64,000 bases of DNA. It comes from Selaginella moellendorffii (lineage: Eukaryota > Plantae > Lycopodiophyta). A program made the translations under genes and the position numbers. The notes under the pieces are model-generated. The model made no database searches. It saw nothing but the letters and a program-made list of their open reading frames with translations, and was not told the origin of the DNA. The DNA is taken from the NCBI RefSeq assembly GCF_000143415.4, contig NW_003314385.1, forward strand, positions 339,296 through 403,295. Direction: 5' to 3'. Below are positions 2,576 through 62,503 of this stretch, one piece after another; position 1 is the stretch's first letter; every line of letters begins with the position of its first letter.

Positions 2576-2814
2576 AGTGGCCCCAGCAGCCACCAAAGTG
2601 CCTGAGGTGGCCGGCCCGAGCTTGACTTCGGGCACTTTAGGGGCCGAAGGGGCCAAGGTTATTTGAATAACCACAATCCCTTGGGCAACCAAAGTGTCTG
2701 AGGTGGCTGGCCCAAGCTCAACCTTGCAGTTTTGTGGGCCGAAGGGCCAAGGTTATTTGCAAGGTGGCTGGCTCAGACTCAACCTCGAGCAATTTGGCCA
2801 CCCAAGTGGCCAAG
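2576..2814. repeat. GC-rich palindromic tandem repeat (~80 bp unit), left part; resumes at 19555-19710
   Basis: Recurring CCAAGGTTATT(T/C)(G/A)AATAACC and GAGGTGGC(C/T)GGCC motifs on both sides of element A. Confidence 0.7.
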
Positions 2815-25066: not shown

Positions 25067-27019
25067 TGTCGCAAATGTGACTTTGGGTATCGAAAGTTAT
25101 CTGTCAGTTGTTCCTTTCGGATATTCTTTCCTTACTACCACGACAGCAAAAAATCGGTATTGCTAGACCTGTTATCAATTTCCCACTTGAGCTAGTTGAG
25201 AAACTGGTCAATGACCATGCACTCAAATTGGATAAACATTATGTGTTTTTTGCTAAGCATACTCGACCTGGTTTGAGAAACTTGAGTCTTTGGCTTGCAC
25301 TTGCTAGTATCCAGAACCCCCACGATATTGAGATTGGTCCCTTAATATTCACTAGATAATAACTTACCATGTCTGCCAAACACCCTCGCTATCATGCCTT
25401 TTGTGTTAATCCCAAATGCTATTTATGAAAAGTGTTTAGATTTGCTCATTTTGGCATATCTATGGAATGTAGAGATTGACCTGAACACAATGGTGTCTGT
25501 CCCGTGTCTAAATTCATAATCTAAGGACATTCCATATTTAGTAAGTTTCGAGCTTGTCCCAGAAACTAACTCCTGATACTAACGGAGGGTTGGGGTGAAA
25601 GCCCAAAGCATGTGTTCCATAAGGAGGGGGGGGGGATCGGGGGTTCCAAATTTATAATAGGGATAGTGGGTAGGTTGGGCATGGCCGACTAACTTGAGGC
25701 ATAGTTTAGCTTTTACTTGCGTGGTTGTCCTTGTTCTGCATCTGGCTTAGGTCTAAGCCCAAGTTCCATTCCATGCTAGCTAGTGGGGTACCCATGTCCT
25801 TGTGTTAGGCCACCGGTATGCCCAAATAGCACCAGATACCATTTGGCTCCGTTTTGCGTGTTAGTCCTAGCATTGGGATGCTAAATATTTTAGGACTATT
25901 TGAAGTCGCTCTGTGCCCCTGTCCCTTTGCTCCTTGGTGTCGCGAATGTAACTTCGAGTATCAAAAGATACTTGTCGGCTAGTCCTTACGGACACTCTCC
26001 TTACTACCACGATGGTAGGAAGTCGGTACTGTTGGTTCCCTTTATGGTCTCTGCCCAAGCTAGTTGAGAAACTGGTCAGCACATGTGCACTTAGACCGGA
26101 AGGGCACTAAGGAAGGATATCCTAAGTTGTTATTATGTCAAGCATACTTGACACGATGATGAGAAACTCATGATGTTGACTTGCACTTGCTAGTGTTGGG
26201 AACCCCCGCGATATTGAGATTAGTCCCTCAATATTCGCTAGATGATAGCTTACCGTGTCTGCCAAACACCTTCGCTATCATGCCCTTTGTGTTAGTCTCA
26301 TTTCCATCTTAAAAGCTATTTATGGAAAGTGTCTAGATCCGCTCATTTGGCATATCTACAGAATGTAGAGATTGGCCTAAACACAATGGTGTTCGTCCCA
26401 TGTCCAAATTCGCAATTTAGCGCTATTCCATATTTGGTAAGTTTCAGACTTGTCCCAGAGACTAACTCCTGGTACTAAGGGAGGCTTGGGGTGAAAGCCC
26501 AAGCATGTGTCCCTCAAGGGGGGGGGATATGGGGGGTTCCAAATGTATAGTAGGGATAGTGGTTGGAATGCATGTCCGACCACCTAAGACATTAGTTTGG
26601 CTTCCGCTGGGCTGTGTCACTCTTTGTTCTATGTCCGGCTTGGGTCTAAGCCCAAGCTCCACACTGCTCTAGTCGGTGGAGTACCCTCCTCCTCGCGTTA
26701 GGCCACCGGTATGCCAAAATTGTAGGTAGGTGCGTGGATACGGGGAGCTGGTGCTCGTGGGATTGTACTGGACCCTCATTCGTAGCGCAACGGGTTTGGA
26801 GTTAGGCTCCAAATTCAGGTGTGCTACATTTGGTATCAAAGCAATTGTCTCAGCGAATCCTATCCAAGTTTTGTCAAATTTTCTGACTCAAGTTGCATAC
26901 GCAGAGACTCTTCTAGTAGATCCGAAGCGACCTGCGTAGGATTAGTGGGATTGCACCATTCGGTAAGAACGTTGTATGCATGTTCAATTACTAATAGAGG
27001 CGTGCATGCAGCTAGCGGG

Positions 27020-30000: not shown

Positions 30001-31735
30001 TATAGTGTCGGCCCTGGAACACTGGAGACACTACTTGGATAGACATACCAAGGTTTATACGGATAGTAACACACTAAGCTACTTTGCTACGCAGCCTAAG
30101 CTTACCCCAAAGCAGGCTCGTTGGCAAGAGAAGCTTGCTAGATATGATATTGAAATCATATATAAACCTGGTAAAGACAATATTGTCCCGGATGCGTTGA
30201 GTCATCAGGCTCAATTCCGGGCAATATCGGCAATCAGTTCGGACTGGTTGGAGGACGTTCGGGCTTCGTATGGAAGTGATCCATTGGCGAAGGCAATTTT
30301 ATGTTGTGCGGGGTTGTTGAAGCAGAGCCCTGGTAGTGAAGCAACAAAAGTTGCTAGTCACACTAATGCAAAGCTTCACTTCTTAGTTCGGAATGGGCTT
30401 ATATTCTATAAGCAAGAAAGATTGTATCTTCCCTCTAAGGATCTTCAGCAGTTACTTCTGCGAAAACATCATGATGTTCCAACAGTGGGACATGGTGGAC
30501 AGCAAAAGACTCTGGCTTCTTTGAAAAAGGGATTTTTCTAGTCTGGTATGGAAGGTGATGTGGTGGACTATGTCCGTTTCTACCCTATATACCAGCAATG
30601 TAAGCGCAGAACTGAGAAACATGCTGGAAAGTTGCAATGCATTCCAGCACTGGCATGGCCATTTCAAAGTGTGACACTTGATTTCGTCACTTACTTGCTG
30701 AAGTCTAAGGGTTATGATACTTTGATGGTGGTTGTGGATTAGTTGTCAAAGATTGCACACTTCATTCCAACTGTGGGAACAGTAAATGCGAAACAAGCAG
30801 CAAAGCTCTTTTTCCATGAAGTAGTGCGGGTTCGTGGTCTTCCTAAAGAAATGATCTCGGATAGAGATTCGAGGTTTATGGGGAAGTTTTGGGGCACATT
30901 ATTCCAGCTGTTTGGTACCAAGTTGAAGTTTAGTACAGCTTATCATCCTCAAACTGATGGGCAGACCGAACGCGTGAATGCTCAAGTTGAGGATTATCTA
31001 CGGTACTATGTCACAGCGGACCAACGCGACTGGGTTGAGCATTTGGATACAGTAGAAATCTATTATAACAACATATTTCACAGTGCTATAGGCTGTTCTC
31101 CATGGGAGATGTTGCAAGGGAATGCTCGTGGGGTTCCTCAACAGATTGTTGTACCGAAACCAATGTCCAAAGTGTTGGTCCCAGCCGTTAAGACTTATGC
31201 GGAGCAACTACACCAAGGTTGGTCTCGGGCTACTAAGGCGATGGGCGACGCTCAGGATAGGTATCGACATGATAAGGATTAGCACCGTCGGGATGTATCC
31301 TATCAAGTGGGAGATCAGTTGTGGCTATCTTCCCGAAACTTGAACATTAAGGGCTCTTTGTCTCGGAAGCTCTTGCCGAGATATGTTGGACCCTATCAGG
31401 TGTTGAAACGCCTTGGTGATGTATCCTATCAGTTGGATATTCCACAAGAGATGTTCAACATTCATGATGTGTTTCATGTCAGTTTACTGGCCCCATATCA
31501 TGAGGATCCTGGTCACTCTCGGGATGTTTGTCCAGCTCCAGATGTTATTGATGGTGAACCGGAGTATGAGGTTGAGGCTATCCTTTTGTCCCGTAAGGCA
31601 CGTGATTGTCGAAACAAGGAATATTTAGTTAAGTGGAAAGGTTACCCATCTTGTGAATCAACTTGGGAACCTCTTAGGAATCTTACACATGCTCGTGAGC
31701 TTGTCACGGAGTATGAGAATCGTAATAAAAAATAG
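27020..31735 (+). pseudogene. gag-pol-chromodomain of D0 with multiple nonsense mutations
   Basis: [50 protein letters not shown]. Colinear with D1. Confidence 0.93.
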
Positions 31736-33105
31736 CTTTCGTAAACCTTGTAATAAATCTTGCAAATTAATAAAGTAATATATTTCTATCAATCAAAAGT
31801 GTCATTTCTCTTGCTCGTTCGTACTTGGGTCAGTTTTGGCAAGCTGACTTCGGCACTTTGGTGCATGGGTCCAATCCATAACCATGGGGATAACTATTAT
31901 AGACTGATCACAAGTCCCTGCCTCTCTCTCAATGCCTCACTTTTGGACAAGGGGTGTGGTCGTGTAAACAACTTAATCTGCCAGTTTATAATGATTGTCT
32001 AAATCTTCCCAACGGGGTTGATTTCTTGCTCAGAGGCAGTTGGGCCTCTAGCCTTATTCCTATGTCCCTGCGGGCAGGGGTGTATCATTCCTTTGTAAGC
32101 CAAATGGTACTCAGAGCAGCAAGGGTGGCTAGCTCCGTTAGTCATTTCCTTGTCGGCGACGGCCGGAGGGTGTCTAAGTCTTAACGTCTTTGGACGTAGA
32201 GGAGAGGTCATTCCATAACTCATTTAAGTCAGTGTGTTTCCCACATAGTGTGCTTTCCGTTAACTTTCGGGGTTGTTTCCTTGACGGTTTGCTAGACTTG
32301 GGTATACATCGACGAGGACGTCGATCTTCCCTAAGGGGGGGAGAGTGTCGCGAATGTGACTTCAGGTATCGAAAGATACTTGTTGGCTAGTCCTTACGGA
32401 CACTCTCTCCTTACTGCCACAATGGCAGAAAGTCGGTACTGTTGGTTTCTTTTATGGTCTCTGCCCAAGCTAGTTGAGAAACTGGTCAACACATGTGCAC
32501 TTAGACCGGAAGGGCACTAAGGAAAAAAATCCTAAGTTGTTATTAAGTCAAGCATACTTAACATGGTGATGAGAAACTCATGATGTTGACTTGCACTTGC
32601 TAGTGTTAGGAACCCCCACGATATTGAGATTAGTCCCTCAATATTTGCTAAATGATAGCTTACCGTGTCTGCCAAACACCCTCGCTATCATACCCTTTGT
32701 GTTAGTCTCATTTCCATCCCAAATGCTATTTATAGAAAGTGTCTAGATCCGCTCATTTGGCATATCTATAGAATGTAGAGATTGGCCTATACACAATAGT
32801 GTTCGTCCCGTGTCCAAATTCGCAATTTAGCGCCATTCCATATTTGGTAAGTTTCAGACTTGTCCCAGAGACTAACTCCTGGTACTAAGGGAGGCTTGGG
32901 GTGAAAGCCCAAAGCGTGTGTCCCTCAAGGGGGGGGGGGGGGGGGGGCCAAGGGGGGTTCCACAATGTTAGTAGGGATAGTGGTTGGAATGCATGTCCGA
33001 CCACCTAAGACATTAGTTTGGCTTCTGCTGGGTTGTGTTACTCCTTGTTCTGCGTCCAGCTTGGGTCTAAGCCCAAGCTCCACGCTGCTCTAGTCGGTGG
33101 AGTCC

Positions 33106-33281: not shown

Positions 33282-36200
33282 AAATGGCACGGATTCGATT
33301 CCCATTGATTATGTGACCAGTCGACAGTAGCTACCCCATGACTAAAGATTTCAATATGCACACGAAGTGCCGAAGCCAGTCTGCCTATTACTGGCCCAAA
33401 CTCAAAGATCAATAGATGGACAATATCAAAGTTATAGACAATGATATCTTAGAGTCGAAATTATCAGTGAATAAATCTTATATTAGAACACAAAAGTATT
33501 CCAAGTAAGGTATTATCTGATAAACTAGTATTACAGCATAGAAACCACCAAGATCATCATAATTGATAAACATAGGAATCACCATCCAACAAAATTCAAT
33601 AGCAAGTAGATCATCAAGGAAACTCAATGATAAAACTTAACTACCGAAAATGGCAGATAGCAAACACCACCAAACAACTCACAAAACACAACTCAAAGAA
33701 CACAAAGTATCATTGACTAACAAGCACAATGCTCGCGAATGTATCACCCGAAGGAAATAACATCCTAATCTATAAGAACTAACTCGAGCAATAATCAACA
33801 GAACAAAATGAATGTTGCAAAGCAAACAAACGCTTATTCATATCAACCATTGCACTAGCCAATCCGGATAGATCCCAGCCAATAACACTAAAGAACTCAA
33901 GTGGCCTAAGCAAGTGTCAGCAACATCCTACTAATGTCTCAAACCCAAGAGACCAATCCAGAGCAAACCACAAACAACTTGTGGTATTGCAAAAAGCCAT
34001 AAGCTATCAAAGAGAACAACTAACCATCATGAAAGATATTAATCATCCCATCAATAAGAGATATGCAGAATCATCATCTTAGAAGGAATCCACCATCACG
34101 AAGAATAGCAAATCAATCTAGATCAACGATAATCAAGCAAAACCTCGTACAAGGATAATCAATTATCCTAGTTGATAGTCAATCATCACCAATGATTGCT
34201 AAATGCAAATACTAACTTGTACATTGAAGCTAAAGAGCCAAAAATGCCTTCCCCCCAACAACTTCTAACAAATGGAACAATGAGCATAATAAACCCAAAG
34301 GACCGAAAGCTCGAAGAAGCCTATAGCTAAGTCTTGTCTAACAATGATCACAAGTCTTGCATGAACCAACTTCAATGTTAAAGAAGAAATCATAGTGCAA
34401 CCCACAATATCCTCCTCAACATATCCATAAGCCAAACTTTATAATGTAAAGCTGATGAAGAGCATTTCTGCATCAATCCAAAAGCTAAGCATAGCAAAGT
34501 TATGCTCAACAAGTGATCACCAAACGATCCTCCATGAATCCATCTATAGCAAGACGTAACTCACTTCATAGCAAGCACAAGAAGAATCATCAATGATTGA
34601 TATATTTCAACTAAAATCCCATAAGGATTCATCGATCACTAACTCTTCCTCTTGTAGAGTTAGCATAATCCACGACTAAATCACTTTTCAAGGAAAAGCT
34701 AAAACTCAACCCTCTACTAAATAATCTCGTCTAGAACACAACTAACTCAACTTGCCACTCAGTTCGTTTGAACGTCAACACAGTTGCTAACTAGCAAATG
34801 CACGAATGCCAACAACACAAAGCTATAGCCAAATCATCAACACTATTTTTATCAGAACTAATGAAACTCAATATCAATCCTACAGAGAGACATCTCATTT
34901 CACTTGAATCTCAATACCAACAATGTCAACAATAGGGCATTACTTCAATGCCATCAACATCAGAACAAAGCTAGAAGAAAGCAAGAGTGAATCACCACCC
35001 AAAGCTCTCAAGCAACCAAGCTAACCATAGTCGAAGATACTTTACTCAGTATCCAAGACCAATTTCTTCAGCAATACTCAGTTATAAATAACACTTCCTC
35101 AAGGAGTGAATCACCACATCCAAGACAAAATGAAATCCAACACCACAGACTAAATGTAACCAAATGATATCGACAGAGGTAGAGTCGACATGTCAACATG
35201 GAAAACCCATGTATGTCTAACGACACGATCCTCTGCAACACTATCCAGTAAAGCAAGCCCATCACTGCTAAATTATCATCGAGAAAAGCAAGTGTCAACA
35301 GTCCTTGATGAAGTCTACAAGTAATCACTAAATGCAAAGCAACTAACAATCACTCCTCAACATGCCTTCACAAGACCCAAACACCAATGCTTGTCACCAA
35401 GTTATATACTCGTCCAACAAGAACGTGATACCCCAGGTACGAGATAAAAGTTCATAGACAAGCACAAACTAAATGACCACTCGAATCCAACTCAACCGCA
35501 ATAAGCTCACTCAAACATTTAGCCACTAGCTCTGAGCATGCCTTGAAGAGGCTAGCTATGCATGATCAACACTCAGCCGAAACGAAAGTGAAGACCATGA
35601 GATGAACTCATATCGGTACACAACCTCCTCATAGACAAAGCTATAGTACGGGTACCAACATCTCAACCTCAAACAACTAAGTTGGACATCACCATCCTCA
35701 GCCAAGGCGCAGGGCCACCAAGACCAAGTCAAGATCAGTGAGAGCTCACTACTCTCATAGAGTCTAACGTAATGCAAGGTGCAACCTGCCACCAAGCACA
35801 ACGCTACAAAAGAAAGGTACAAGGGTCACCTTTCTGAGAAAAGTGCAACGGCCACTTTTTTATATCAACTCTAGACTCTATCCAACTCAATTATTTTATC
35901 CCCAAAAGTCAGCATCCCTTTCGGGCCGCATTATACAAACTACTTATCAGGGTCTAAGCTAACTGAAGTCAACTCCAACCCCTTCACTAGTTTGTACTGG
36001 CTTACGAAAATGGAATGGTTTTCGGCAAAGTGACCAACAGATCAGCCATTGGAGAAGTTTAAGAAAATTAGTGGAAAATTTTCCATCCCAGAGAAAGAAT
36101 GACTCTTAGTCCAGGAATAAAAACTTTCAAGACTCAACCAACTTCTTCCTACTAACAACTTCACATAGATTCCCTTCAACACAGATTCTTATGATCCATA

Positions 36201-39517: not shown

Positions 39518-40453
39518 TTTTGTATCAGAGGATGAGTCTCGGCGAGTACTATCCAATGAAATTGGGCAACTAGTCTCATTGCATATGCAAAAATGAGAAT
39601 GATGATCCGAGTGGGTACACGTTTGGGTGCAAAGACTTTGCAATCGTTCCTTAGGTATGGATTTTGGTTACACTTTGAGCTAATAAGATGGATTTGAGGT
39701 GTACCATTTTGCATGAGTTTGCGCTTGGGTTCATGAGTGAGGCACATTAGCAACTCAAGGTTACACTTAGAGTTGACAAAATTAATATTAGCCTATTGGT
39801 GGTTCCATGAGTTATTCCTTGTACCATGGGATAAAGTAAACCTCCCCTAGGTTTGCATAGAGTGGTGAATAGGCTGGTCAGTAGATGTTTAGCACAGCAC
39901 TAGTGGATCCTTCCTAGATATGATTACAAGTGGATCAACCAAGATTATAAAGATTAGTCTATTGGTTCAAGTAATCATTGCCGTACTCTCTTATCAACTT
40001 TTCTTGGATTGGACTGAAGGCAATGCGAATGCAAGCTTGAGGTTTAGTCAAAGATGAAACCGAAAGAGAGTCATCAGGGATGAAGAATCAAACACGTAAA
40101 TCATCTTCTCTTTTGGAGAAATGATTTGCAATGAGGTGTTAACATATTGTTCGTGTTCACATTATGCAATCAAGAGTCCCTATCTTAATGCATGTTGGAA
40201 ATGATGGTTTTGCAAGTGGTGAGTCATGGGATGGATAGCGGTGAAGCATTAAACCATTTTGTCTAGGTTTATAATTAAAGACTTGGGTTGCAATGCTTAA
40301 TTCTTTTTTAAAGAACTTTGTTATTGCTCCTTGAGTAGTTTGGTGTTAAAATAGTTTTGAGTTTGGTCAGAAAAAAAGTGGTATGAACTTGTCCGTGTTG
40401 TAAAAAAAAGTTAATAGTGTTGGGTGTTGCAAGTCTCTATTGGTAGAGTGTGG
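39518..40453 (+). mobile_element. 5' internal region of a family C element, truncated
   Basis: Reverse complement of ~36977-37929; begins with the PBS. Confidence 0.85.
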
Positions 40454-42176
40454 AACAAAAGGGTAAAACCTCATTTGATTTTGATCTTCAGTACGGATAC
40501 AAACTGTGAAAGCATGGCCTATCGATCCTTTAGTGTTTCCAAATTTGAAGCTAGAGGTGTCAGAAAAGTTGTCTTCCACCTTTAAAACATGCCCATCTCC
40601 CATCTCTATCATTGCAGTCATAAACTTGTCGCTCGTCCAGAGAAGAAGCCTACACTGTGAACACTTGTACTGGCAGTCTCTAACAGGAGTTGGCCTTCCA
40701 GAGGCAGCATCCGGACGTAGCGTGACAACGTCGATACCTCCTTTCCCTGTACTGAAAGCCAGTCTAGCTTGGCCCTTGCTATCTGGTTCCCAGCACCATG
40801 CACTGATAAAGAGCTTGGCTCTGGTTCCATACTCATCATCTGGAACCCGGTAATAAGGTCTCGGACGCTCTTCGGGATCCCCCACTGTATCTCTGAAGTC
40901 TAGCAAGCTGAATGCCACTAAGTTTGCTGGATAAGTCGTCGTGCCGATGGCCCTTGCGTCGACAAGTACAATCTCACCGAGCCGAAGCAGTAGCACGAAC
41001 CCCAGGAATGCGGGCATCTCCACGACACCATAAGTTAGAAAATCGATGGCCGGCTCTCCAGAAGGATGATACCGTGCTCCCAAGTGTATCGAACGCTCAT
41101 TCGTGTCGCAAAGTAGAACTTGCAGTTCGTTCGACAGAGCACCCTTCCTGTAAGGAACACTCCCGAGTTACTCTCAATCCTGGTGAGCAGAAAATTATCT
41201 AGGCTCTGTGTACCTATGCAAAATTACCGCGAGCAAAAGCTGGTGGGATTCCTCTGGGCTAGCAACAAAGGCCATGCTCCATATCGTTCCCCATCCATAC
41301 GTTGACTCTGCGTCATTTGCTACGTTACCCGGTGCTGGATATGTTATGGCCTGAAGGAAGGGTGTCAGGCAACTAGTACCAGAAAGAAAAACACACTAGC
41401 CTTCTCGACGACATTCTCCCCAGCTGCAACAGAGGTAGGAAATATTGCTACCAAATCTTCGATAGCAGAAACCGCTACAGCGCGAGATCTGTATCACAAA
41501 AGGTTTCCTATGAAATAAAACGTTCGACTTTATCGCACCTGGAGTCGACAGCAAGTAGCCATCCGAGCTCGCGAAGAGAAGTCCCGGGATGAGAGAGATG
41601 AATTTGACTGACAGCCACAAACCTGTAAAAGAGAAAGAGAAAACAGGTAAGAAGAGCGAAAAAAACCTTGATTTTTCTAATTCCATGGTACCTGTGCAGA
41701 TCGACACTGAAAGTCAGGAAGGAGAGTTTTCCGGAATCTGAAAGCAGCACGAGTAAGTCCTTGCCGTAGGTCTATGATAGAGAGATGGAACATTAGTTAA
41801 CAGTAGACTATAGCACAGTACATCGTTCTAAAGCATAGAATTTTATCTTACCTGCGAGTAAGGAGCTCGACGATGTTCATTCCAAGGGAGCAATTTCATG
41901 TCCTTGATGATTCCAAACACACTCTGCTCACACACCGGCTGCACGCTCCCATCTTCGACGAGCACGACAAGCTCCAGGGCGGTCTCCTGTGCGCAAATTC
42001 CAGCTCAAAACCAAGATAGATGGAGCTCCTACCTTGCCGAAGACCACCTCCAGCATCAGCGGCGATCGAATGTGGCCGCACACAGCATAAGAGACGACGC
42101 TGCTCTTCTGGAGGCATTTGGCGAGATAGAGAACCTCGCTGTCGTCCTCGGCAGCGCTCGCGTCCTGGACTGCCAT
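40454..42176 (-). pseudogene. 3'-truncated SF3B3/RSE1/CPSF-A-family beta-propeller gene (similar to Arabidopsis At3g11960 as recalled)
   Basis: Exons 42176-42033, 41986-41852, 41771-41692, 41622-41539, 41488-41401, 41350-41214 and 41147-~40470 splice in frame. Motifs YLAKC..VVFGKET, GKDLL..LSDSGKLSFL, W.WEP, EMGDG. Runs into TE sequence after ~450 aa. Confidence 0.85.
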
Positions 42177-50888: not shown

Positions 50889-53800
50889 TGTCGCGAATGT
50901 GACTTCGGGTATCGAAAGATACTTGTCGGCTAGTCCTTACGGACACTCTTTCCTTACTGCCATGACGGCAGGAGGTCGGTACAGTTGGTTCCCTTTATCG
51001 TTCCCACTTGAGCTAGTTGAGAAACTGGTCAATGACCGTGCACTTAAATTGGATAAACATAAGGTAGGAACCCTATGTGTTTCTTGCTGAGCATACTCGG
51101 CCTGGTTTGAGAAACTCGTATCATTGGCTTGCACTTGCTAGTATCAAGAACCCCCGTGATATTGAGACTAGTCCCTCAATATTTACTAGATGATAGCTTA
51201 CCGTGTTTGCCAAACACCCTCGCTATCACGCCTTTTGTGTTGGTCTCATTTTGGTCCCAAATGCTATTTATGGAAAGTGTCTAGATTAGATCATTTGGCA
51301 TATCTACGGAATGTAGAGATCAGCCTGAACACAATGGTGTTTGTCCCGTGTCCAAATTCACAATCTAAGGACATTCCATACTTAGTAAGTTTCGGACTTG
51401 TCCTAGAGACTAACTCCTGGTACTAAGGGAGGCTTGGGGTGAAAGCCCAAAGCGTATGTCCCTCAAGGGGGGGGGGCTATGGGGGGTTCCAAATGTATAG
51501 TAGGGATAGTGGTTGGAATGCATGTCCGACCACCTGAGACATTAGTTTGGCTCCCGCTGGGCTGTGTCGCTCCTTGTTCTGCGTCCGGCTTGAGTCTAAG
51601 CCCAAGCTCCACGCTGCTCTAGTCGGTGGAGTACCCTCCTTCTCGCGTTAGGCCACCGGTATGCCAAAATTGTGCCAGACTCCGTCTGACACCATTTTGC
51701 GTGCAGGTGCTGGATACGGGGAGCTGGTGCTCGTGGGATTGTACCGGACCCTCGTTTCGTAGCGCAACGGGCTTGGAGTTCGGCTCCAAATTCAGGTGCG
51801 CTACATTTGGTATCAGAGAAATTGTCTCAACGATTTCTATCCAACTTTTGTCGGATTTTCTGACTCAAGTTGCATACGCAGAGACTTTTCTAGTAGATCC
51901 GAAGCGACCTGTGTAGGATTAGTTGGATTGCACCATTTGGTAAGAATGTTGTATGCATGTTCAGTTACTGATAGAGGCATGCATGCAGCTAGCAGGATGG
52001 TGAAGAGGAACCGTGCTGATGACGCTGAAACCTCTAGACGGGCGAATCGAGAGGAGGAAACTCCTGCTAGAGATGCTACGGAAGGGGCTGAGGCCGAGTC
52101 AGAAGAGCATGAGCCAAATGCTGCAGCACTGCAGCGCACGGCTCATGAAGTCGAGATCGAGAATTTGCGAAAGGAGATTCGCAAATTGAAGAAGGAGAAC
52201 AAGAAGAGGAAGAAAGAAGCTGAGGCAGCTAAACCAGCTAAGCCTAAGCAACCGGACTCCTCTTCAAGTTCTGAGGACGATGAAGTTATGCAGCCGCCCC
52301 CGGTTGCACGAGTTTCAAAGTTCAAGCCTCCGAAACCACCCAATTTCAGAGGCATGCGGGACTATCAGGTTTTGGAAGACTGGGTCTACGATATGGAGAA
52401 CTACTTCATAGCGGCAGACGTGGATGATCGTACGAAAGTTGCGTGCGCGCAATCCTTTCTCACCGATCATGCCAAAACTTGGTGGCGCCAGGTGTGTGCT
52501 GAAAAAGGGCAGACTAGAAGTTGGACCAAGATGCGGTCTCGTATCCGTAAGGAATACTTGCCGGATGATCTTGGTCTGAGACTTCGCGCAGAGCTGCGGC
52601 GGTTAAAGCAGCGAGGGGACCTTATGCATTACGTTAATGCGTTTGCTCAGAAGCGCATTATGATTGCAAATATGAGTGACGAAGATGCTCGGAGTTATTT
52701 CCTGGAGGGTTTAAGTTCACTTTCTCGAAATGAGATTTTGAAGTTTAAGCCGAAGACGTACCTGGAGTGTAAAGAGGCAGCACAGCAAGTTGCCTTTAGT
52801 CACTCGCTCATAGAACAATATCAGCAATCGTATGCTGGTAATTCGGACAAGAATAAAAATTCTGGGAATAAGCAAGGTGATCGGAAACAAAGGGTGGAAA
52901 GTAGGTACCGCCCTGGGGGCTCACAAGCTACAGTGAATAAAGGTGGTGGTGGTTGGAGACCACCAGCAGCTTCTTCTGGTCCTAGGCCCTTTGTTCCTCC
53001 TCCTGGTGGGTACAAGCAGCAGCAACCTACAAAACCTGCTCCTAGCGGAACGGGTAGTGTGGGTCATTGCTTCCATTGTGGAGAGTCGGGACATAAGTCC
53101 TCGGAATGTCCCAACAAGCATAAGACAAGGTCTCGGGTTAATGTCATGCGGGAAGACGGTGGTGGTGAAGCCGAAGAGGTTGACGAGTTGGTCAATGCAG
53201 ACTATGAGGAAGAGGAGGTGAGTAACTTTCGTTGCTTTCCTCAAGCTTTTCTTGCAGTCAATGCAAACACTGATCCGTTGATGTATCTGGTAGGCTTTGT
53301 CCGTGGACACCGAATCCGAGTGATGATTGACACGGGAGCTACGCACAGTGTGATATCCGAAGACTTAGTTAAGTTGTTAGGATTGAATGCTGAGCAAATG
53401 TCGCCTATGCACTTCCGGTTTGCGGAAGGTGGGCAAGTAGCCAGAAAGTTTGTGAGTAATGTTCCAATAAAGATATCCAAGTGGAAAGAAAGAGTGGACT
53501 TGGTAGTGTTGAAGATACCAGATTTTCAGATGGTGTTTGGTATGGATTTCTTCAACAAGTATATAAAAGGGATTTATGGTGCTGGACAAAGTCGTATCAC
53601 ATTGAAGTCAGAAGGACATCCTGATGTATCCTTTCAGTTGCAAAAGCGTTCCTCAAAGGATTGGGATGCAAAGTTCCTGACTGTGAGGGCCGCTCAAAAA
53701 GCAGCTAAAAGGGGATGTCAGACCTTTTGGGTTCAAGTGATGGAAGCTGAGGGTGTGGGTGACTCAGTACAAATCGGCGACGGGGTTGATCCTGTACCGA

Positions 53801-56800
53801 AACGGATATTGGAGTTGTTGGCGAGGAATCAGGATATCTTTCCGAAGGATTTGCCGCCAGGGCTACCTCCTAGCCGTGAGGTTGATCATCGGATTGAGAT
53901 TATTCCGGGTTCTAAACCACCTACGAAAGCTCCATATCGGTTGAACATCAAGGAGATGGCTGAACTCAAGAAGCAACTCACGGAGCTTCTTGAAAAAGGT
54001 CATATCCGACCAAGCAAGTCACCTTATGGAGCGCCAATCCTTTTTGTTATGAAAAAGGATGGAACCATGAGGATGTGTATTGACTATCGGGCACTCAACA
54101 AGATCACGGTTAAAAACAGTTATCCTTTGCCTCGCATTGATGACTTGTTTGACCAACTCTTAAAGGCTAAGTATTTTACGCGACTTGATTTGCGGTCCGG
54201 GTATCATCAGATACGGGTGGCAGATCAGGATGTGGAGAAGACAGCCTTTAAGACTCGGTACGGATCTTATGAGTTCCTTGTCATGCCATTTGGATTATGC
54301 AATGCTCCGGCAACGTTCAGCACTATGATGGATAGAATATTCAGAGATTACTTGGATGCATTTGTTGTCCTGTATATTGACGATGTTCTAGTCTTTAGTG
54401 AAACGTTGGAGGATCATTTGAAACACTTGGAGCTGGTGTTTTAGAAGTTGCGCGAACACAAACTGTATGCTAAGGAAAGTAAATGCGCTTTTGGACAATT
54501 GCGCGTAAACTTTCTCGGACATATAGTTGGTGGTGGCGTGATTGAGGTCAATCCAAAGAAGGTGGAAGCAGTGAAGTCCTGGGAAGTCCCGACCACTGTA
54601 TCAGATGTTCGTTCCTTTCTCGGTTTGGCGGGATACTATCGCAAGTTTGTCCGCAATTTTGCAAGAATTGCTCTTCCATTGACTGAGTTGACGAAGAGTA
54701 GTATTCCGTTTCATTGGACACCAGCTTGCCAGCGTGCTTTCGCACGGTTGAAGGAGATCTTGACTACGGTTCCTGTTCTAAGGATCCCAGATCTTGATAA
54801 ACCCTTCGAAGTGCATTGTGATGCATCTGGCTATGCTATTGGTGCCGTGTTGCAGCAAGATTGTGACAAAGCGGTTGGTGTTACGCTGAGGCGACATGGT
54901 TGTCCCGTTGCGTTCTATTCCAAGAAATTGGATGCGACCCAACGAAGATGGCCAACGCATGAGAAAGAGATGTTTGCTATAGTGTCAGCCCTGGAACACT
55001 GGAGACACTACTTGGGTGGACATACCAAGGTTTATACGGATAGTAACACACTAAGCTACTTTGCTACGCAGCCTAAGCTTACGCCGAAGCAGGCTCGTTG
55101 GCAAGAGAAGCTTGCTAGATATGATATTGAGATCATATATGAACCTGGTAAAGACAATATTGTTCCGGATGCGTTGAGTCGTCAAGCTCAATTCCGGGCA
55201 ATATCGGCCATCAGTTCGGACTGGTTGGAGGACGTTCGGGCTTCGTATGGAAGAGATCCATTGGCGAAGACAATCTTACGCCGTGCGGAGTTGTCGAAGC
55301 AGAGCCCTGGTAGCGAAGCAGCAAAAGTTGCTAGTCGCACTAATGCAAAACTTCACTTCTTAGTTCGGGATGGGCTTATATTCTATAAGCAAGAAAGATT
55401 GTATCTTCCCTCTAAGGATCTTCAGCAGTTATTTCTGCGGGAACATCACGATGTTCCAGCAGCGGGACATGGTGGACAGCGAAAGACTCTGGCTTCATTG
55501 AAAAAGGGATTTTTCTGGTCTGGTATGGAAGATGATGTAGCGGACTATGTCCGTTCCTGTCCTGTATGCCAGCAATGTAAGCGCAGAACTGAGAAGCAGG
55601 CTGGAAAGTTGCAGTGCATTCCAGCACCGGCATGGCCATTTCAAAGTGTGACACTTGATTTCGTCACTTGCTTGCCGAAGTCTAAGGGTTATGATACTTT
55701 GATGGTGGTTGTGGATCGGTTGTCAAAGATTGCACACTTCATTCCAACTGTGGGAACAGTAAATGCGAAACAAGCAGCAAAGCTCTTTTTCCATGAAGTA
55801 GTGCGAGTTCGTGGTCTTCCTGAAGAAATGATCTCAGATAGAGATTCGAGGTTTACGGGGAAGTTTTGGGGGACCCTATTCCAGTTGTTTGGTACCAAGT
55901 TGAAGTTTAGTACAGCTTACCATCCTCAAACCGATGGGCAGACCGAACGCGTGAATGCTCAAGTTGAGGATTATCTGCGGTACTATGTCGCGGCGGACCA
56001 ACGCGACTGGGTTGAGCATTTGGATACGGCAGAAATATGTTATAACAACACATTTCATAGCGCTATAGGCTGTTCTCCATGGGAGATATTGCAAGGGAAT
56101 GCTCGTGGGGTTCCTCAACAGATCGTTGTCCCGAAACCAATGACCGAAGTGTTGGTCCCAGCCGTGGAAACTTATGCGGAGCAGCTACGCCAAGGTTGGT
56201 CTAAAGCTACCGAGGCGATGGGCAAAGCTCAGGATAGGTATCGACGTGATAAGGATCAGCATCGTCGGGATGTATCCTATCTAGTGGGAGATCAGGTGTG
56301 GCTATCTTCCCGGAACTTGAACATCAAAGGTTCTTTGTCTCGGAAGCTCTTCCCGAGATATGTTGGACCCTATCGGGTGTTGGCACAAGTTGGTGATGTA
56401 TCCTATAAGTTGGATCTTCCGGATGAGTTGTCCCATGTACATGATGTGTTTCATGTCAGTTTATTGGCACCATATCGTGTTAATGCGGATCGCTCTATGG
56501 ACATTCGTCCCCCTCCGGAAGTTGTGGATGGTGATATGGAGTATGAGGTCGAGGCGATTCTCTTGTCCCGCAAAGCTCGTGGTAGTCGTTCCAAGGAATA
56601 TTTAGTTAAGTGGAAAGGTTACCCGACTTGTGAATCAACTTGGGAACCTCTTAGTAATCTTACCCATGCTCGTGAGCTTGTCACGGAGTATAAGAATAGT
56701 AATAAAGACTAGCTTTTGTAATAAATCTTGCAAATTAATAAAGTAAAATATTTCTATCACTCAAGTGTCGTTTCTCTCGATCAATTGTACTTGGGTCAGT

Positions 56801-58235
56801 TTTGGCAGGCTGACTTCGGCACTTCGGTGCATGGGTCCAATCCATAACCATGGGGATACCTATTATAGACTGATCACAGGTCCCCGCCTCTCTCTCGATG
56901 ACTCCTTTTCAAAAAAAAAAAAAGGGGCGTGGTCGTGTAAACAACTTAATCTGCCAGTTTATAATAGTTGTCTAAATCTTCCCGACGGGGTTGATTTCTT
57001 GCTCAGGGGCAGTTGGGCCTCTGGCCTTCTCCCTATATCCCTGCGGGCAGGGATGTATCATTCCTTTGTAAGCTGAGTGGTACTCAGAGCAGCAAGGGTG
57101 GCTAACTCCGTTGGTCATTTCCTTGTCGGCGACGGCCGGAGGGTGTCTGAGTCTTAACGTCTTTGGACGTAGAGGAGAGGTCGTTCCATAACTCATTTAA
57201 GTCGGTGTGTTTCCCACATAGTGTGCTTTCCGTTAACTTTCGGAGTTGTTTCCTTGACGGTTTGCTAGACTCGGGTATGCATCGACGAGGACGTCGATCT
57301 TCTCCAAGGGGGGGAGAGTGTCGCGAATGTGACTTTGGGTATCGAAAGATACTTGTCGGCTAGTCCTTACGGACACTCTTTCCTTACTGCCATGACGGCA
57401 GGAGGTCGGTACAGTTGGTTCCCTTTATCGTTCCCACTTGAGCTAGTTGAGAAACTAGTCAATGACCGTGCACTTAAATTGGATAAACATAAGGTAGGAA
57501 CCCTATGTGTTTCTTGCTGAGCATACTCGGCCTGGTTTGAGAAACTCGTATCATTGGCTTGCACTTGCTAGTATCAAGAACCCCCGTGATATTGAGACTA
57601 GTCCCTCAATATTCACTAGATGATAGCTTACCGTGTTTGCCAAACACCCTCGCTATCACGCCTTTTGTGTTGGTCTCATTTTGGTCCCAAATGCTATTTA
57701 TGGAAAGTGTCTAGATTAGATCATTTGGCATATCTACGGAATGTAGAGATCGGCCTGAACACAATGGTGTTTGTCCCGTGTCCAAATTCACAATCTAAGG
57801 ACATTCCATACTTAGTAAGTTTCGGACTTGTCCTAGAGACTAACTCCTGGTACTAAGGGAGGCTTGGGGTGAAAGCCCAAAGTGTATGTCCCTCAAGGGG
57901 GGGGGGCTATGGGGGGTTCCAAATGTATAGTAGGGATAGTGGTTGGAATGCATGTCCGACCACCTGAGACATTAGTTTGGCTCCCGCTGGGCTGTGTCGC
58001 TCCTTGTTCTGCGTCCGGCTTGAGTCTAAGCCCAAGCTCCACGCTGCTCTAGTCGGTGGAGTACCCTCCTTCTCGCGTTAGGCCACCGGTATGCCAAAAT
58101 TGTGCCAGACTCCGTCTGACACCATTTTGCGTGCAGGTGCTGGATACGGGGAGCTGGTGCTCGTGGGATTGTACCGGACCCTCGTTTCGTAGCGCAACGG
58201 GCTTGGAGTTCGGCTCCAAATTCAGGTGCGCTACA
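50889..58235 (+). mobile_element. D1: young full-length chromovirus (tRNA-Met PBS, canonical chromodomain; Galadriel-like by inference)
   Basis: 917-bp LTRs at 50889-51805 and 57319-58235 with about 5 transitions by eye. PBS TGGTATCAGAG at 51808. PPT AAGGGGGGGAGAG at 57306-57318. No TSD. Confidence 0.95.
51997..56712 (+). pseudogene. Single-frame gag-PR-RT-RH-INT-chromodomain of D1 with one nonsense codon
   Basis: The 882-aa and 754-aa ORFs share a frame, separated by TAG at 54442-54444 where D0 has CAA. Confidence 0.93.
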
Positions 58236-61200
58236 ACAGACACTGAATTCGAGTGATGATTGATATAGAAGCTACGCACAGTGTGATATCTAAAGACTTA
58301 GTTAAATTGTTAGGATTGAAAGCTGAGTAGATGTCGCCCATACACTTTTGGTTTGTGGAAGGTGGGCAAGTAGCTAGAAAATTTGTGAGTGATGTTCCAA
58401 TGAAAATATTTAAATGGAAAGAAAGAGTAGACTTGGTAGTGTTAAAGATACCAAATTTTCAAATGGTGTTTAGTATGGATTTCTTCAACAAATATACTAA
58501 AAGGATTTATAGTGTTGGACAAAATCACATTATATTAGGTCAGAAGGACATCCTAATGTGTCCTTCCAATTGCAAAAGCACTCTCCAAACGATTGAGATG
58601 CTAAGTTTTTGATTATGAGAGTTGCTCAAAAAGCAGCTAAGAAGGGATGTTGGACCTTTTGGGTTCAAGTGATGGAAGTTAAGGGTGATGGTGATTTAGT
58701 TCGAATTAGTGACAAGGTTGATCTTGTACCAAAGGAGATATTAAAGTTGTTGGTGTGGAATCAAAAGATCTTTCTGAAGGATTTACCACCAAAGCTACCT
58801 CTTAATTGTGAGGTTGATCATTAAATTGAGATTATTCCAAGTTCTATACCACATACAAAAGTTTTATGTCATTTGAACATCAAGGAGATAGCTAAACTCA
58901 AGAAGGAACTCATATAGCTTCTTGACAAAAATCATATCTAACCAATTAAGTCACCTTATGGAGTGTTGATCTTTTTTGTTATAAAAAAGAATGGTACTAT
59001 GAGAATGTGTATTGATTATCAGGCATTTAATAAAATCATGATCAAAAAGAATTATCCTTTGCCTCATATTAATGACTTGTTTGTCCAACTTATAAAGGCT
59101 AAGTATTTTACACAACTTGATTTACGATTCGGGTATCATCAGATATGGGTGGCAAATTAGGATGTGGAAAAGACACCCTTTAAGACTTGGTATGGGTCCT
59201 ATGAGTTCCTTGTTATGCCATTTGGGTTATGCAATGCTCCGACAATATTGAGCACTATGATGGATAAAATATTTTATTTAGACACATTTATTGTCTTATA
59301 TATCAACAATGTTCTAGTCTTTAGTGAAATATTGGAGGATCATTTGAAACACTTGGGAGCTGGTGTTTCAAAAGTTGCATGAACACAAACTATATGCTAA
59401 AGAAAGTAAATATGCTTTTGGGCAATTGTGCATGAACTTTCCTGGACATATAATTGGTGGTGTGATTGAGGTGGATCCAAATAAGGTGGAAGCGATGAAG
59501 TCTTAGAAAGTGCCAACCACTGTATTAGATATCCATTTTTTTCTCGGTTTGGTAGGATACTATTGTAAGTTTGTTTGCAATTTTGCAAGAATTTTTCTTT
59601 TGTTCACTAAGTTAACAAAGAGTAGTATACTGTTTCATTGGATATGAATTTGTCAATATGCTTTTATATGGTTGAAGAAGATTTGGACTACGGTTCCTGT
59701 CACGATTTTAGATCTTGATAAACCCTTTAAAGTGCATTATGATACATTTGGCTATGCTATTGGTGCCATGTGGCAACAAGATTATGACAAAGCAATTAGT
59801 GTTATGCTAAGGTGACATAGTTGTCCTATTGCGCTTTTATTCCAAGAAATTGGATGAAACCCAAGAAAGATGGCCAATGCACGAGAAAGAGATGTTTGTT
59901 ATAGTGTCAGCATTGGAACATTGGAAACATTATTTGGGTGGACATACCAAAGTTTATACAAATAATAACACATTAAGCTACTTTGCTATGCAGCCAAAGT
60001 TTACATTGAAGTAGGTTCATTGGTTAGAGAAGCTCACTACATTTGATATTGAAATCATCTATAAACCTGGTAAAGACAATATTGTTCTAGATGCATTGAG
60101 TCGTCAAGCTTAGTTTTGGGCAATGTCGGCAATCAATTTAGACTAGTTGGAGGACATATGGGCTTCATATGGAAATGATCCGTTGGTGAAGGTAATGTTG
60201 CACTGTGCGGAGTTGTCGAAGCAAAACCCTAGTAGCAAAGTAGCAAAAGTTGCTCGTCGTACTAATGCGAAACTTCACATTTCTATTCAAGATGGGCTTA
60301 TTTTTTATAAGCAAGAAAGATTGTATCTTCCCTCTAAGGATTTGTAGCAATTGTTTTTTCGGGAACATCATGATATTCTAGCAGCGGGATATGGTGGAAA
60401 ACAAAAGACTCTTGCTTCATTGAAAAAAGGATTTTTCTAGTTTGGTATGGAAGATGATGTAGCGGATTATGTCTGTTCTTGCCCTATATGCCAGTAATGT
60501 AAGTGCAAAACTGAGAAGCAGGTTGGGAAGTTGCAATGCATTCCAGCACTAGCATGGCTATTTTAGAGTGTGATACTTGACTTTATCACTTGCTTGTCGA
60601 TATCTAAAGGTTATGATACTTTGGTGGTGATTGGTTGTTGAAGATTGCACACTTCATTCCAACTGTGGAAATAGTGAATGTGAAGCAAGTAGTAAAGCTC
60701 TTTTTCCATGAAGTAGTGCAGGTTCATGGTCTTCCTGAAAAGATGATCTTAGATAGAGATTTGAGATTTACAAGGAAGTTTTAGGGCACATTGTTCCAAT
60801 TATTCGGTACTAAGTTGAAGTTTAGTATAGCTTATCATCCTCAAACCAATGGGTAGACCGAATGTGTGAATGCTCAAATTGGGGATTATCTGTGGTACTA
60901 TGTCATAGCAGATCAACACAACTAGGTTGAGCATTTAGACACAACAGAAATCTGTTATAATAACATATTTCATAACACTATTGACTATTCTCCATGGGAG
61001 ATGTTGCAAGGGAATATTTATTAATAGAATGTTGTAATGAAACCAATGTTTGAATTGTTAGTCTAACTATTAAAACTTATGTAGAGCAGCTACACCAAGG
61101 TTGGTCTAGAGCTACTAAGGCAATGGGCAAAGCTGAAGATAGGTATCAATGTGATAAGGATTAACATCGTCAGAATGTATCCTATCAAATGGGAGATTAG

Positions 61201-62503
61201 GTGTGGCTATCTTTCCAAAACTTGAATATTAAGGGATCTTTGTCTCAGAAGCTGTTACCAAGATATGTTGGACCCTATGGGGTGTTGAAACAAATTGGTG
61301 ATATATCCTATTAGTTGGATATTCCACAAGAGATATCTAGACTTCTTCATGTCAGTTTACTGGCCCCATATCATGAGGATCTTGGCCGCTCTAAGGATGT
61401 TCATCCAGCTCCGAATATTATTAATGGTGAACTTGAGTATAAGGTTGAGGCTATTATTTTGTCTTATAAGGCACGTGGTGGTTGAACTAAAGAATATTTA
61501 ATTAAGTGGAAAGCTTACCTAGTTCATGAGCTTGTCACGGAATATGAGAATCATAATAAAGACTAGCTTTTGTAAATCTTATAATAAATCTTGTAAATCA
61601 ATAAAGTAATATAATTTTATAACTCAAAGTTTTGTTTCTCTCATTTGTTAGTACTTGGGTTTGTCTTGGCAGGCTGACTTTGGCACTTCAATGCATGAGT
61701 TCAATCGATAACCATGGGGATAATTATTATAGACTAATTACAAGTCCCCACCTCTTTCTTGTTGACTCATTTTTGAAAAAGGGTGTAGTCATGTAAAAAC
61801 TTCATCTACCAGTTTATAATAGTTGTCTAAATCTTCTCGACATGGTTGATTTCTTGCTCAGGGGAAGTTGGGCCTCTGGCCCTCTCCCTATATCCCTACG
61901 GGTAGGGATGTACCATTCCTTTATAAGCCAAGTGGTACTCGAAGGGTGGCTAACTCTATTAATCATTTTCTTATTAGTGACAGCCGAAAAATATCTAAGT
62001 CTTAATGTTTTTGGATATAGAGGAGATATTGTTCCATAACTCATTTAAATTGGTGTGTTTTTTTTACATAGTGTGGTTTCCTTTAACTTTCTGAATTGTT
62101 TCCTTGACGGTTTGCTAGACTCAGATATGCATCGATAAAGATGTCAATCTTCCCTAATGGGGGGAAAGTGTCACAAATGTGATTTCGGGTATCGAAAGAT
62201 GCTTGTCAGCTAATCCTTACAAACACTCTCTCCTTACTGCCACAATTGTAGGAGGTTAGTACTGCTAGTTCCCTTTATGGTCTTTGCCCAAGTTAGTTGA
62301 GAAATTGGTCAGCACATGCGCACTTAGACTAGAAGGGCATTAAGGAAAGAAATCCTAAGTTGTCATTAAGTCAAGTATATTTGACATAGTGATGAGAAAC
62401 TTATGTTATTGGTTTGCACTTGTTAGCATTGGGAACCCCCACGATATTAAAATTGGTCTCTCAATATTCTCTAAATGATAGCTTACTGTGTTTGCTAAAC
62501 ACC

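Follow-up and report, generated by a model that had tools for sequence, protein, structure and literature searches.

The 3′ end of a long terminal repeat (LTR) retrotransposon in Selaginella moellendorffii carries a run of short stems between positions 56780 and 57890 of the 64,000-nt stretch of DNA analysed here (the window), and the question it raises is whether these stems form one functional RNA domain of more than 1 kb, as originally predicted, a smaller set of selected structures, or the hairpin background expected of any such element.

The locus is the 3′ end of a chromodomain Ty3/gypsy element

Within one chromodomain Ty3/gypsy retrotransposon copy (copy B), the interval 56780-57890 runs from the 3′ UTR through the polypurine tract into U3, of which it takes in about 570 nt, and it corresponds to the 3′ end of the template in the genomic RNA of this element. 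Its parts are as follows.

50889-58235: retrotransposon copy B, chromodomain Ty3/gypsy, Selaginella moellendorffii
56713-57305, plus strand: 3′ UTR of copy B, between the pol stop codon TAG (56710-56712) and the polypurine tract; alignable with four further copies
57306-57318, plus strand: polypurine tract AAGGGGGGGAGAG, immediately 5′ of the LTR-initial TG; kept in five of five copies
57319-58235, plus strand: 3′ LTR of copy B, 917 bp, TG...CA; self-BLAST identity with the 5′ LTR (50889-51805) 99.45%

Copy B has the make-up of a chromovirus, with gag, protease, RT, RNase H and an integrase with a C-terminal chromodomain (Pfam), together with a TG...CA LTR pair, a polypurine tract and, at 51808 on the 3′ side of the 5′ LTR, a primer binding site of the tRNA-iMet type (TGGTATCAGAGA). 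The reading frame that encodes RNase H, integrase and chromodomain ends at 56712, and the 3′ UTR beyond it holds no long ORF, the longest being one of 103 codons for amino acids with a GTG start. One S. moellendorffii protein is 86% identical to the element, and more copies lie on GL377771.1 and GL377607.1. The relatives in the protein database include two S. moellendorffii gene models that touch this retrotransposon family; the others are at most 49% identical and are thus of no use for UTR alignment. In DNA contigs from a public run, summed depth (which does not equal copy number) was far higher on the LTR and 3′ UTR than on the coding bins 56400 to 56591, an excess that fits the existence of many non-coding relatives retaining these parts. 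In two RNA-seq runs labelled as the same species, a portion of about 9.2 million records from each yielded no reads at 85% likeness, the presence of the organism in that portion being unproven.

Most of the stems probably belong to the hairpin background of the element

Every stem listed in the original prediction was found where it had been placed, and the interval contains a real yet modest excess of hairpins. Six perfect hairpins of at least 6 bp occur in its 1,111 nt, compared with 1.4 after dinucleotide shuffling (six being reached in 1 of 200 shuffles), and hairpin density is 5.4 per kb compared with a window-wide mean of 3.7 per kb; such hairpins are also enriched in the coding region of the element (13 versus 6.0).

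We then asked whether these stems add up to a single domain. That the whole 1.1 kb of 3′ UTR and U3 might be one large functional RNA, possibly catalytic, draws some support from the short hairpins above shuffle level, from the presence of some covariation and from the folding of the 606-nt UTR, which lies below its own shuffles (z -4.1, with only 20 shuffles for each strand), but the minus strand of the UTR likewise scores -2.7. Window by window, folding was no stronger than in the coding region of the element, with a mean z of about -1.1 in 150-nt windows of 56780-57890 against about -1.4 in the coding region, so that the expectation of an unusually low folding energy was not borne out; consensus folding in 120-nt windows gave a mean z of -1.87, compared with -1.28 for coding controls. 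Of the 392 predicted pairs, moreover, 280 (71%) fall outside four short modules, and when these pairs change they keep pairing at the level of chance (0.424 versus a null of 0.435, P 0.61).

The fate of individual stems in other copies also argues against a single domain. The stem CTGAGT/ACTCAG is broken in copies A and C3 and in the family C copy (famC), every departure among copies from TGATAGC/GCTATCA and from GTGTTT/AAACAC is a break, GGTATC-GAAA-GATACT is half kept and half broken, and GGT-GAAA-GCC is a stem of 3 bp. The UUCG loop proposed for the region is present in copy B, but B is alone in this among the compared sequences, copy A having UUUG and C3 a broken stem.

No ribozyme or other family was recognised that would give substance to the suggested catalysis. 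A search of the whole window with Rfam 15 at the gathering score returned a fragment of LSU rRNA (40389-40556) as its sole match, and at 56600-58300 with E up to 10 the best matches had E values of 0.5-8, far under gathering, with no ribozyme or tRNA among them. A tRNA-like element was likewise rejected, as ARAGORN found no genes in 56600-58300 and Rfam no tRNA at E up to 10. Cyclisation between the 5′ and 3′ ends was also considered and rejected: the best duplex of the 5′ leader (51450-52010) with the 3′ region, at -42.7 kcal/mol, equals that of shuffles (-42.5 +/- 2.3).

Taken together, these observations largely refute the reading of the interval as one large domain, which we now regard as very improbable. 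The more general proposal of a structured, functional RNA region survives in part, in that selected sense-strand structure exists and is common to copies with a non-coding interior, although it consists of a few modules totalling about 300-350 nt. We think it likely that most of the stems seen by eye are ordinary background of the element and that a minority are selected sense-strand RNA structures.

A long hairpin in U3 covaries on the sense strand

The best supported of these structures lies in U3, and its parts are given below.

57437-57578, plus strand: long U3 hairpin, 142 nt; 5′ LTR twin at 51007-51148
57516-57531, plus strand: apical hairpin, 6 bp, loop CAUA
57449-57456, plus strand: module 1, 5′ side, GAG (paired) and AAACU (loop); partner UGCA-CUU at 57560-57566
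57539-57546, plus strand: module 2, 3′-arm side, GAG and AAACU; partner UGCA-CUU at 57469-57475

Twelve copies, which fall into three sequence types and all come from one species, retain the hairpin, so the independent events behind the following counts are few, and the structural modules were chosen from the same data used for scoring. Its consensus fold has a z of -5.3 on the plus strand and -0.8 on the minus strand, which loses the fold because several of the commonest pairs are G-U. RNAalifold found 13 compensated pairs, as against 4.1 +/- 2.1 in column-shuffled alignments. When 11 copies were aligned without regard to structure, 90.5% of cells were paired and covariation scored 0.377, compared with 0.255 after shuffling and at most 0.127 when partners are slid; overall, slid-partner controls reach at most 0.15 against 0.38-0.42 observed. 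Copies B, A5 and Lm2420 each fold on their own into the same overall long hairpin with the same outer closing stem. Between B and A5, 16 of the 38 pairs have changed and 13 of these 16 still pair: seven are doubly compensated (four GC-richer in B, three in A5), six are kept with a one-sided change and three are broken. Type III copies add further compensations by transversion. No stretch of U3 varies more than the interior of the hairpin (identity 0.32-0.53), and pairing is nonetheless kept there.

The apical hairpin is the stem that had been singled out as varying in a compensatory manner. The variants GCTGAG/CTCGGC (57516, with its 5′ LTR twin at 51086), GTCAAG/CTTGAC (26137) and GCTAAG/CTTGGC (2204, minus strand) are indeed homologous, and a fourth, GCCAAG/TTTGGC, was found in L002. 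Here 95.5% of cells are paired, with pair types CG:5/UA:4 and AU:6/GC:4. A covariance-model search with the U3 hairpin over 138 kb returned LTR copies only.

Within the long hairpin, module 2 is module 1 turned by 180 degrees. This duplication is non-random and conserved: an exact 10-nt repeat and an exact 7-nt repeat, spaced by 90 and 91 nt, occurred together in none of 5000 shuffles, and the sequence between the repeated motifs matches at background level (26-31%). In B3, A3, A5 and Lm39088 the two modules carry an identical motif pair, GAGAAACT/TGCACTT, and the modules of S1_3, S1_5, C3 and famC differ by single changes, that in S1_5 (GAG:CUU to GAA:UUU) being compensatory; type III copies have AGU:ACU in both modules.

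Comparison among copies thus appears to give strong support to the U3 hairpin, which we consider very probably a selected structure. We infer its placement in U3, and its presence in the RNA, from the logic of LTRs alone.

Smaller modules in the 3′ UTR

Four further hairpins were considered in the 3′ UTR.

56974-56997, plus strand: hairpin H1 (AAAUC..CCC / GGG..GAUUU); three double compensations in famC, including the transversion pair CG to AU
57034-57057, plus strand: hairpin H2, 10 bp, loop CGGG; includes the originally listed ATCCCTG/CAGGGAT
57092-57126, plus strand: 15-bp hairpin with invariant G-U pairs, in the part of the UTR where the coding family and famC are most alike
57201-57286, plus strand: long branch-free hairpin just 5′ of the polypurine tract

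H1 and H2 (56974-57057) appear moderately supported by comparison among copies. The H1 module window has a z of -3.6 and five compensated pairs against 1.7 in the matched null (P 0.027); in H2, 96% of cells are paired, two pairs have changed on both sides and kept changes outnumber broken ones by 7:1. These hairpins would probably belong to the same class of cis signals as the U3 hairpin. At 57092-57126, 95.9% of cells are paired, yet 9 of the 15 pairs never vary, and identity to famC across 57088-57132 is 0.90-0.93, which points to conservation rather than covariation.

The domain adjoining the polypurine tract (57201-57286) may also be structured, but the comparative signal there is weak. 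The hairpin has a z of -2.66 when folded alone, its helices are 90-97% paired, and it competes with the local hairpin ATCGACG/CGTCGAT at 57281-57298. Its compensations, found in C3 or famC, are exclusively GC-to-AT transitions (matched null, P 0.06). Covariation is thus not clearly retained in this domain after removal of methylation-type transitions, whereas it holds for the U3 hairpin, where GC gains, GC losses and transversions all occur.

The homology of the family C 3′ UTR (24539-25066) was confirmed, at about 71-78% identity. What can be recognised of this copy is its 3′ UTR and a single LTR (24539-25937); upstream of these the window contains no matching 5′ LTR and only short ORFs. The copy keeps the 3′ UTR modules and the U3 hairpin, although in the latter there is a deletion and the fold is no more stable than in shuffles (z -0.37). 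The lineages share LTR and 3′ UTR segments in mosaic fashion, a pattern suggestive of recombination, and because of this mosaicism the retention in family C is weak evidence by itself.

Alternative explanations for the conserved hairpins

Could the pairing have arisen with no selection at all, from chance palindromes, shared descent and a methylation-driven C-to-T decay that tends to keep G-U and A-U pairing? The differences in C3 are mostly C-to-T and G-to-A, compensations close to the polypurine tract (57201-57286) run in one direction, as described above, and base- and CpG-matched pseudo-pairs keep pairing in 41-44% of changed cells, all as such decay would predict. It does not account, however, for the compensations in the U3 hairpin, which run either way between the same two copies and comprise transversions as well, nor for their excess over column-shuffled alignments and the failure of slid-partner controls to approach the observed score, and we therefore hold this explanation to be improbable. 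It is also conceivable that the U3 element works as DNA, with the repeated motifs serving the LTR promoter as enhancers or transcription-factor sites and the pairing being secondary. The element does lie within U3, the promoter part of the LTR, and TGAGAAACT and TGCACTT are each direct repeats in the DNA, 90 bp apart and more conserved than the stems; binding sites would nevertheless leave unexplained both the compensatory changes in the flanking stems and a good fold confined by G-U pairs to the sense strand, which makes a purely DNA-level role unlikely. Roles of the U3 element at the DNA and RNA levels could coexist.

Being long (about 140 nt), imperfect and part of an abundant repeat, the U3 hairpin might, alternatively, be the precursor of small RNAs, whether a miRNA-like product or a trigger of host silencing. 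Its large conserved internal loops and loop sequence are better suited to recognition by a protein than to Dicer processing, and selection on the element would disfavour a silencing trigger, so that we give this origin little credence. The explanation that we prefer overall, and consider probable, is a small number of selected sense-strand structures, chief among them the 142-nt U3 hairpin as a candidate docking site.

A candidate docking site and its relation to known systems

From its base, the docking site would consist of a closing stem and a 3-bp GAG:CUU helix beside an internal loop of AAACU x UGCA; a middle helix of 8 bp then leads to the same module at 180 degrees, a third stem and a variable tip. 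It would act in cis on the RNA of the element by docking two copies, or a dimer, of one protein. The partner could be the Gag/nucleocapsid of the element itself, for packaging, or a host factor acting in export or in the stability of the long-UTR transcript. The folding of RNA rather than single-stranded DNA, the binding of a protein and the step of the life cycle concerned are all inferred. A role of the hairpin as a cis-acting RNA signal for replication or expression seems to us an even proposition, and one specifically in export rather doubtful.

Cis-acting RNA signals determine the choice of RNAs for export, packaging and copying, and also which non-coding parasites can exploit an autonomous element. 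To our knowledge, hardly any signals of this kind are known in plant LTR retrotransposons apart from the primer binding site, polypurine tract and LTR ends. The U3 hairpin, which is compact, supported by covariation and endowed with a duplicated loop motif, offers a concrete object for binding and reporter experiments. Stem runs seen by eye in S. moellendorffii retroelements, on the other hand, would mostly be background, and any claim of this kind should be judged against a matched null.

In the retroviral constitutive transport element (CTE), a long stem-loop of 150-175 nt carries two internal loops; it is located in the 3′ untranslated portion of a retroelement RNA that is not spliced (PMC7551171). 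The U3 hairpin resembles it as an extended stem-loop of 142 nt with two internal loops of the same sequence (GAG-AAACU / UGCA-CUU) related by a 180-degree rotation. The loops of the CTE, too, are reportedly mutual copies at 180 degrees, each binding one NXF1/TAP, as Ernst et al. in 1997 and Teplova et al. in 2011 are said to have found. The U3 hairpin differs in having no Rfam similarity to the CTE, in its position, which is within U3 and not in the interval from the last gene to the LTR, and in its lycophyte host. As far as we know, land plants lack a recognisable NXF1 ortholog, and the putative partner protein would thus differ from that of the CTE. By analogy, the hairpin might be a plant retrotransposon counterpart of the CTE, a two-fold pseudo-symmetric RNA that recruits two copies of a protein, whether of the host or of the element, to export, stabilise or package unspliced genomic RNA and its long 3′ UTR, independently evolved in a lycophyte chromovirus and common to its non-coding parasites, but we consider so specific an equivalence doubtful.

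Two further systems invite comparison. In Sire elements and HIV, sequence upstream of the polypurine tract has been proposed to pair with the start of U3 (PMC3601003). The polypurine tract and first LTR bases of copy B can similarly pair with 57370-57385, with poor comparative support (one compensation, four one-sided changes kept and six broken), but the tract would here occupy a stem and not a loop. Retrozymes, which are plant LTR elements of the non-autonomous kind, have hammerhead ribozymes within their LTRs (PMC4918200), and the U3 hairpin is likewise a structured RNA motif within the LTR of a plant retroelement; unlike in retrozymes, Rfam found no match to the hammerhead or any other ribozyme family in the copy B region.

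Finally, conserved RNA structure is said to have been described by Kalendar et al. in 2004 for the non-coding LTR retrotransposon derivatives known as LARDs and TRIMs. The family C copy is comparable in its retention of the 3′ UTR modules and U3 hairpin. In contrast to the multi-kilobase internal domain of LARDs, the structures supported here are short modules common to the coding family.

Copy B and its relatives in the window

Self-comparison of the window delimited copy B, a full LTR retrotransposon that spans 50889-58235. Its two ORFs encode gag, a zinc knuckle, protease, reverse transcriptase, RNase H, integrase, an SH3-like domain and a C-terminal chromodomain, a domain set that identifies the element as a chromovirus (a chromodomain LTR retrotransposon); an annotated S. 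moellendorffii protein is 86% identical to its integrase tail.

Features of copy B and related elements
50889-51805 and 57319-58235 (+): 5' and 3' LTRs of copy B, 917 bp, 99.45% identical, with TG start and CA end
51808 (+): primer binding site of tRNA-iMet type, TGGTATCAGAGA, after the 5' LTR
56710-56712 (+): pol stop codon of copy B
57306-57318 (+): polypurine tract, AAGGGGGGGAGAG; the LTR begins right after, at 57319
25938-33103: copy A, older, LTRs 93% alike
58239-62503: copy C3, truncated and transition-rich
24539-25937: 3' end of "family C"
2420-1531 and 39088-38183 (-): two minus-strand LTRs (Lm2420 and Lm39088)

Given the positions of the stop codon, the polypurine tract and the LTR start, the region under study, 56780-57890, takes in most of the 3' UTR (593 nt in all), the polypurine tract and some 570 nt of U3. 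None of the copies in the window is intact. An in-frame stop (TAG, 54442-54444) cuts the copy B polyprotein in two within the reverse transcriptase region, at a site that reads CAA in copies A and S1 and is frameshifted in C3, and copy A carries eight internal stops. Judged by its LTRs, copy B is young despite its one in-frame stop. Further copies are found on two other S. moellendorffii contigs, GL377771.1 and GL377607.1. An inverted fragment (33311-33700, minus strand), 77-89% identical to the start of the family C 3' region (24370-24626), lies shortly after the truncated 3' LTR of copy A, suggesting that insertions here were nested or rearranged.

Stems are frequent, and conserved pairing is local

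The original prediction saw in this region a near-continuous run of stems forming more than 1 kb of structured RNA. Stems are indeed present, with a modest excess over chance: there are six perfect hairpins of at least 6 bp against 1.4 expected, with an excess in the coding region of the element as well (13 against 6.0), and the density is 5.4 per kb compared with a window mean of 3.7 per kb. Another element, at 2001-8000, has 8-14 such hairpins per kb; this stretch has a strongly negative GC skew, and 12-nt tandem repeats form arrays at 3990-4189 and 18959-19266.

Folding energy does not separate the region from the remainder of the element. Single-sequence z-scores in 150-nt windows average about -1.1 here and about -1.4 in the coding region, and the whole 606-nt UTR scores -4.1 sense and -2.7 antisense (20 shuffles per strand). 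Consensus folds of 120-nt alignment windows, compared with column shuffles, average -1.87 sense and -1.34 antisense; coding controls scored in the same way average -1.28 on either strand, their minima being -4.2 and -4.4.

We then predicted a structure from copy B alone and scored whether predicted pairs that had changed in other copies could still pair, using pseudo-pairs matched for base and CpG context as the null. The sample consists of twelve copies of three sequence types from one species. The kept-pairing fraction was 0.50-0.535 in the 3' UTR against a null of 0.41 +/- 0.04, and in U3 the sense strand alone had an excess of double compensations, at about two to three times the null value; R-U5 gave no pairing signal over the matched null. 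Taken helix by helix, the comparative signal is confined to a few helices, many others being broken in other copies. Four modules, namely the U3 hairpin (57437-57578) and a few short 3' UTR structures, hold 46 double compensations against 8.0 in the null, a figure that is partly circular since the modules were picked from the same data. The figure for the remainder is free of this circularity: the 280 of 392 predicted pairs outside the modules had a kept-pairing fraction of 0.424, the null being 0.435 (P 0.61), and showed 23 double compensations where the null gave 19.5. The stems are thus real, but pairs outside the modules stand at chance, and the idea of one continuous structured RNA does not hold.

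A covarying hairpin in U3

RNAalifold on nine copies gave 34 pairs in the U3 hairpin, 13 of them with changes on both sides, compared with 4.1 +/- 2.1 compensated pairs when the full pipeline was run on column-shuffled alignments; shuffle and slide controls of the pair counter were also far below the observed value. The consensus energy z is -5.3 sense and -0.8 antisense. On a structure-blind MAFFT alignment of 11 copies, a four-helix model paired 90.5% of cells, with a covariation score of 0.377 (0.255 shuffled, at most 0.127 slid), and a covariance model picked up two more diverged copies on one of the two other contigs. The 3' LTR of copy B, the 5' LTR of copy A and Lm2420 each fold alone into the same overall long hairpin with the same outer closing stem (z -2.6 to -3.0), which the antisense strand of B does not form. 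The stem first noticed to vary in a compensatory manner is the apical hairpin of this structure, for which a fourth perfect variant was also found.

Between B and the 5' LTR of A, 16 of 38 pairs differ: seven are doubly compensated (four GC-richer in B, three in A), six changed on one side yet still pair, and three are broken. Extra transversion compensations come from type III copies. Because methylation-driven decay cannot yield changes in both directions, the covariation of this hairpin persists once transitions of that type are discounted. Its interior is the most variable stretch of U3 (identity 0.32-0.53 to other types), as expected when shape rather than sequence is conserved.

The hairpin also contains a duplicated module. 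TTGAGAAACT occurs twice (57447 and 57537), as does TGCACTT (57469 and 57560), at spacings of 90 and 91 nt; among 5000 dinucleotide shuffles, 24 had a 10-nt repeat and none a second repeat at a matching offset. Between the motifs the hairpin halves match at background only (26-31%), which rules out a recent tandem duplication as their origin. In the predicted fold, GAG pairs with CUU and AAACU lies opposite UGCA at the junction of the closing stem with the middle helix; at the junction of the middle helix with the third stem, the same unit recurs, rotated by 180 degrees. Both modules are identical in both LTRs of A, the 3' LTR of B and Lm39088; the other four type I/II copies (both S1 LTRs, C3 and family C) have single changes, including a compensated GAA:UUU in the S1 5' LTR, and type III copies have AGU:ACU in both modules.

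Short structures in the 3' UTR

Two UTR hairpins, 56974-56997 and 57034-57057, pair in 95% of cells, with double-sided changes in six pairs, among them a CG-to-AU transversion pair in family C (z -3.6; five compensated pairs against 1.7 in the matched null, P 0.027). Within the UTR, conservation with family C is highest at 57088-57132 (identity 0.90-0.93); a 15-bp hairpin whose G-U pairs are invariant can form in this block, which hardly varies. The domain immediately 5' of the polypurine tract (57201-57286) folds well (z -2.7). Its covariation does not clearly outlast the discounting of methylation-type transitions, the compensations being all GC-to-AT and in the two most diverged copies (matched null P 0.06), and selected structure is only weakly supported there.

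The polypurine tract and first LTR bases (57309-57325) can pair with a pyrimidine-rich U3 stretch (57370-57385), with one compensated pair in family C and six cells broken in other copies. A hypervariable UTR spot (56893-56925; identity 0.5-0.6 even to close copies) carries in B A13 followed by GGGG, resembling a second polypurine tract, where other copies are shorter and different.

Possible roles of the U3 hairpin

In the best reading, the U3 hairpin would be a cis-acting signal on the sense RNA, and so, probably, would the two UTR hairpins. Most likely, two copies of one protein would then dock at the duplicated module, serving packaging by Gag, or export or stability. As an additional or alternative role, the duplicated motifs could be DNA-level promoter elements, which leaves the covariation of the stems and their strand specificity unexplained.

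The retroviral constitutive transport element (CTE) is a 150-175-nt stem-loop with two internal loops (PMC7551171). As a long stem-loop with two internal loops, the U3 hairpin resembles it in layout, a likeness of working rather than of membership, since it has no sequence or Rfam similarity to the CTE, sits inside U3 and belongs to a plant host. The two CTE loops are reportedly, according to the primary papers, rotated copies of each other. Among open-access papers and preprints, we found none that describes a structured element in the U3 or 3' UTR of chromoviruses from Selaginella or other plants; besides the retroviral CTE, the nearest published ideas are the RNA structures conserved in LARDs and TRIMs (PMC7215508), stem-loops around the polypurine tract (PMC3601003) and retrozymes (PMC4918200). 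Searches of the region found no known RNA family, ribozyme or tRNA-like fold, and 5'-3' complementarity did not exceed chance. Two RNA-seq runs gave no matching reads, the presence of the organism in the portion read being unconfirmed.

Mosaic LTRs and other LTR features

Comparison of 57319-58235 with the LTRs at 25067-25937 and 25938-26840 showed that the U3 of B has higher identity to family C (0.85) than to copy A (0.82-0.83); for its 3' UTR (0.92) and R-U5 (0.94), copy A is the closest. This mosaic suggests recombination between lineages inside the LTR, so that sharing between families may reflect recombination as well as constraint. In DNA contigs from a public run, summed depth was far higher on the LTR and 3' UTR than in coding bins (56400-56591), which fits many relatives keeping these parts without genes, although depth is not copy number.

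The part of the LTR most conserved over all types, 57616-57935, ends at TGTATAGTAGGG (57923-57934) and is also where depth in the DNA run is highest, at up to 3.0 million; other parts of the LTR have 0.3-1.3 million. At 40389-40556 (plus strand), transposon sequence surrounds an isolated 168-nt piece of eukaryotic large-subunit rRNA (model positions 2621-2802, 73 bits). Within the LTR, sense-specific consensus folding is strongest at 58033-58152 (z -4.9, against +0.4 antisense), where four pairs covary; as its 5' LTR twin (51603-51722) is situated 85-200 nt 5' of the primer binding site, this is probably a 5' leader structure.
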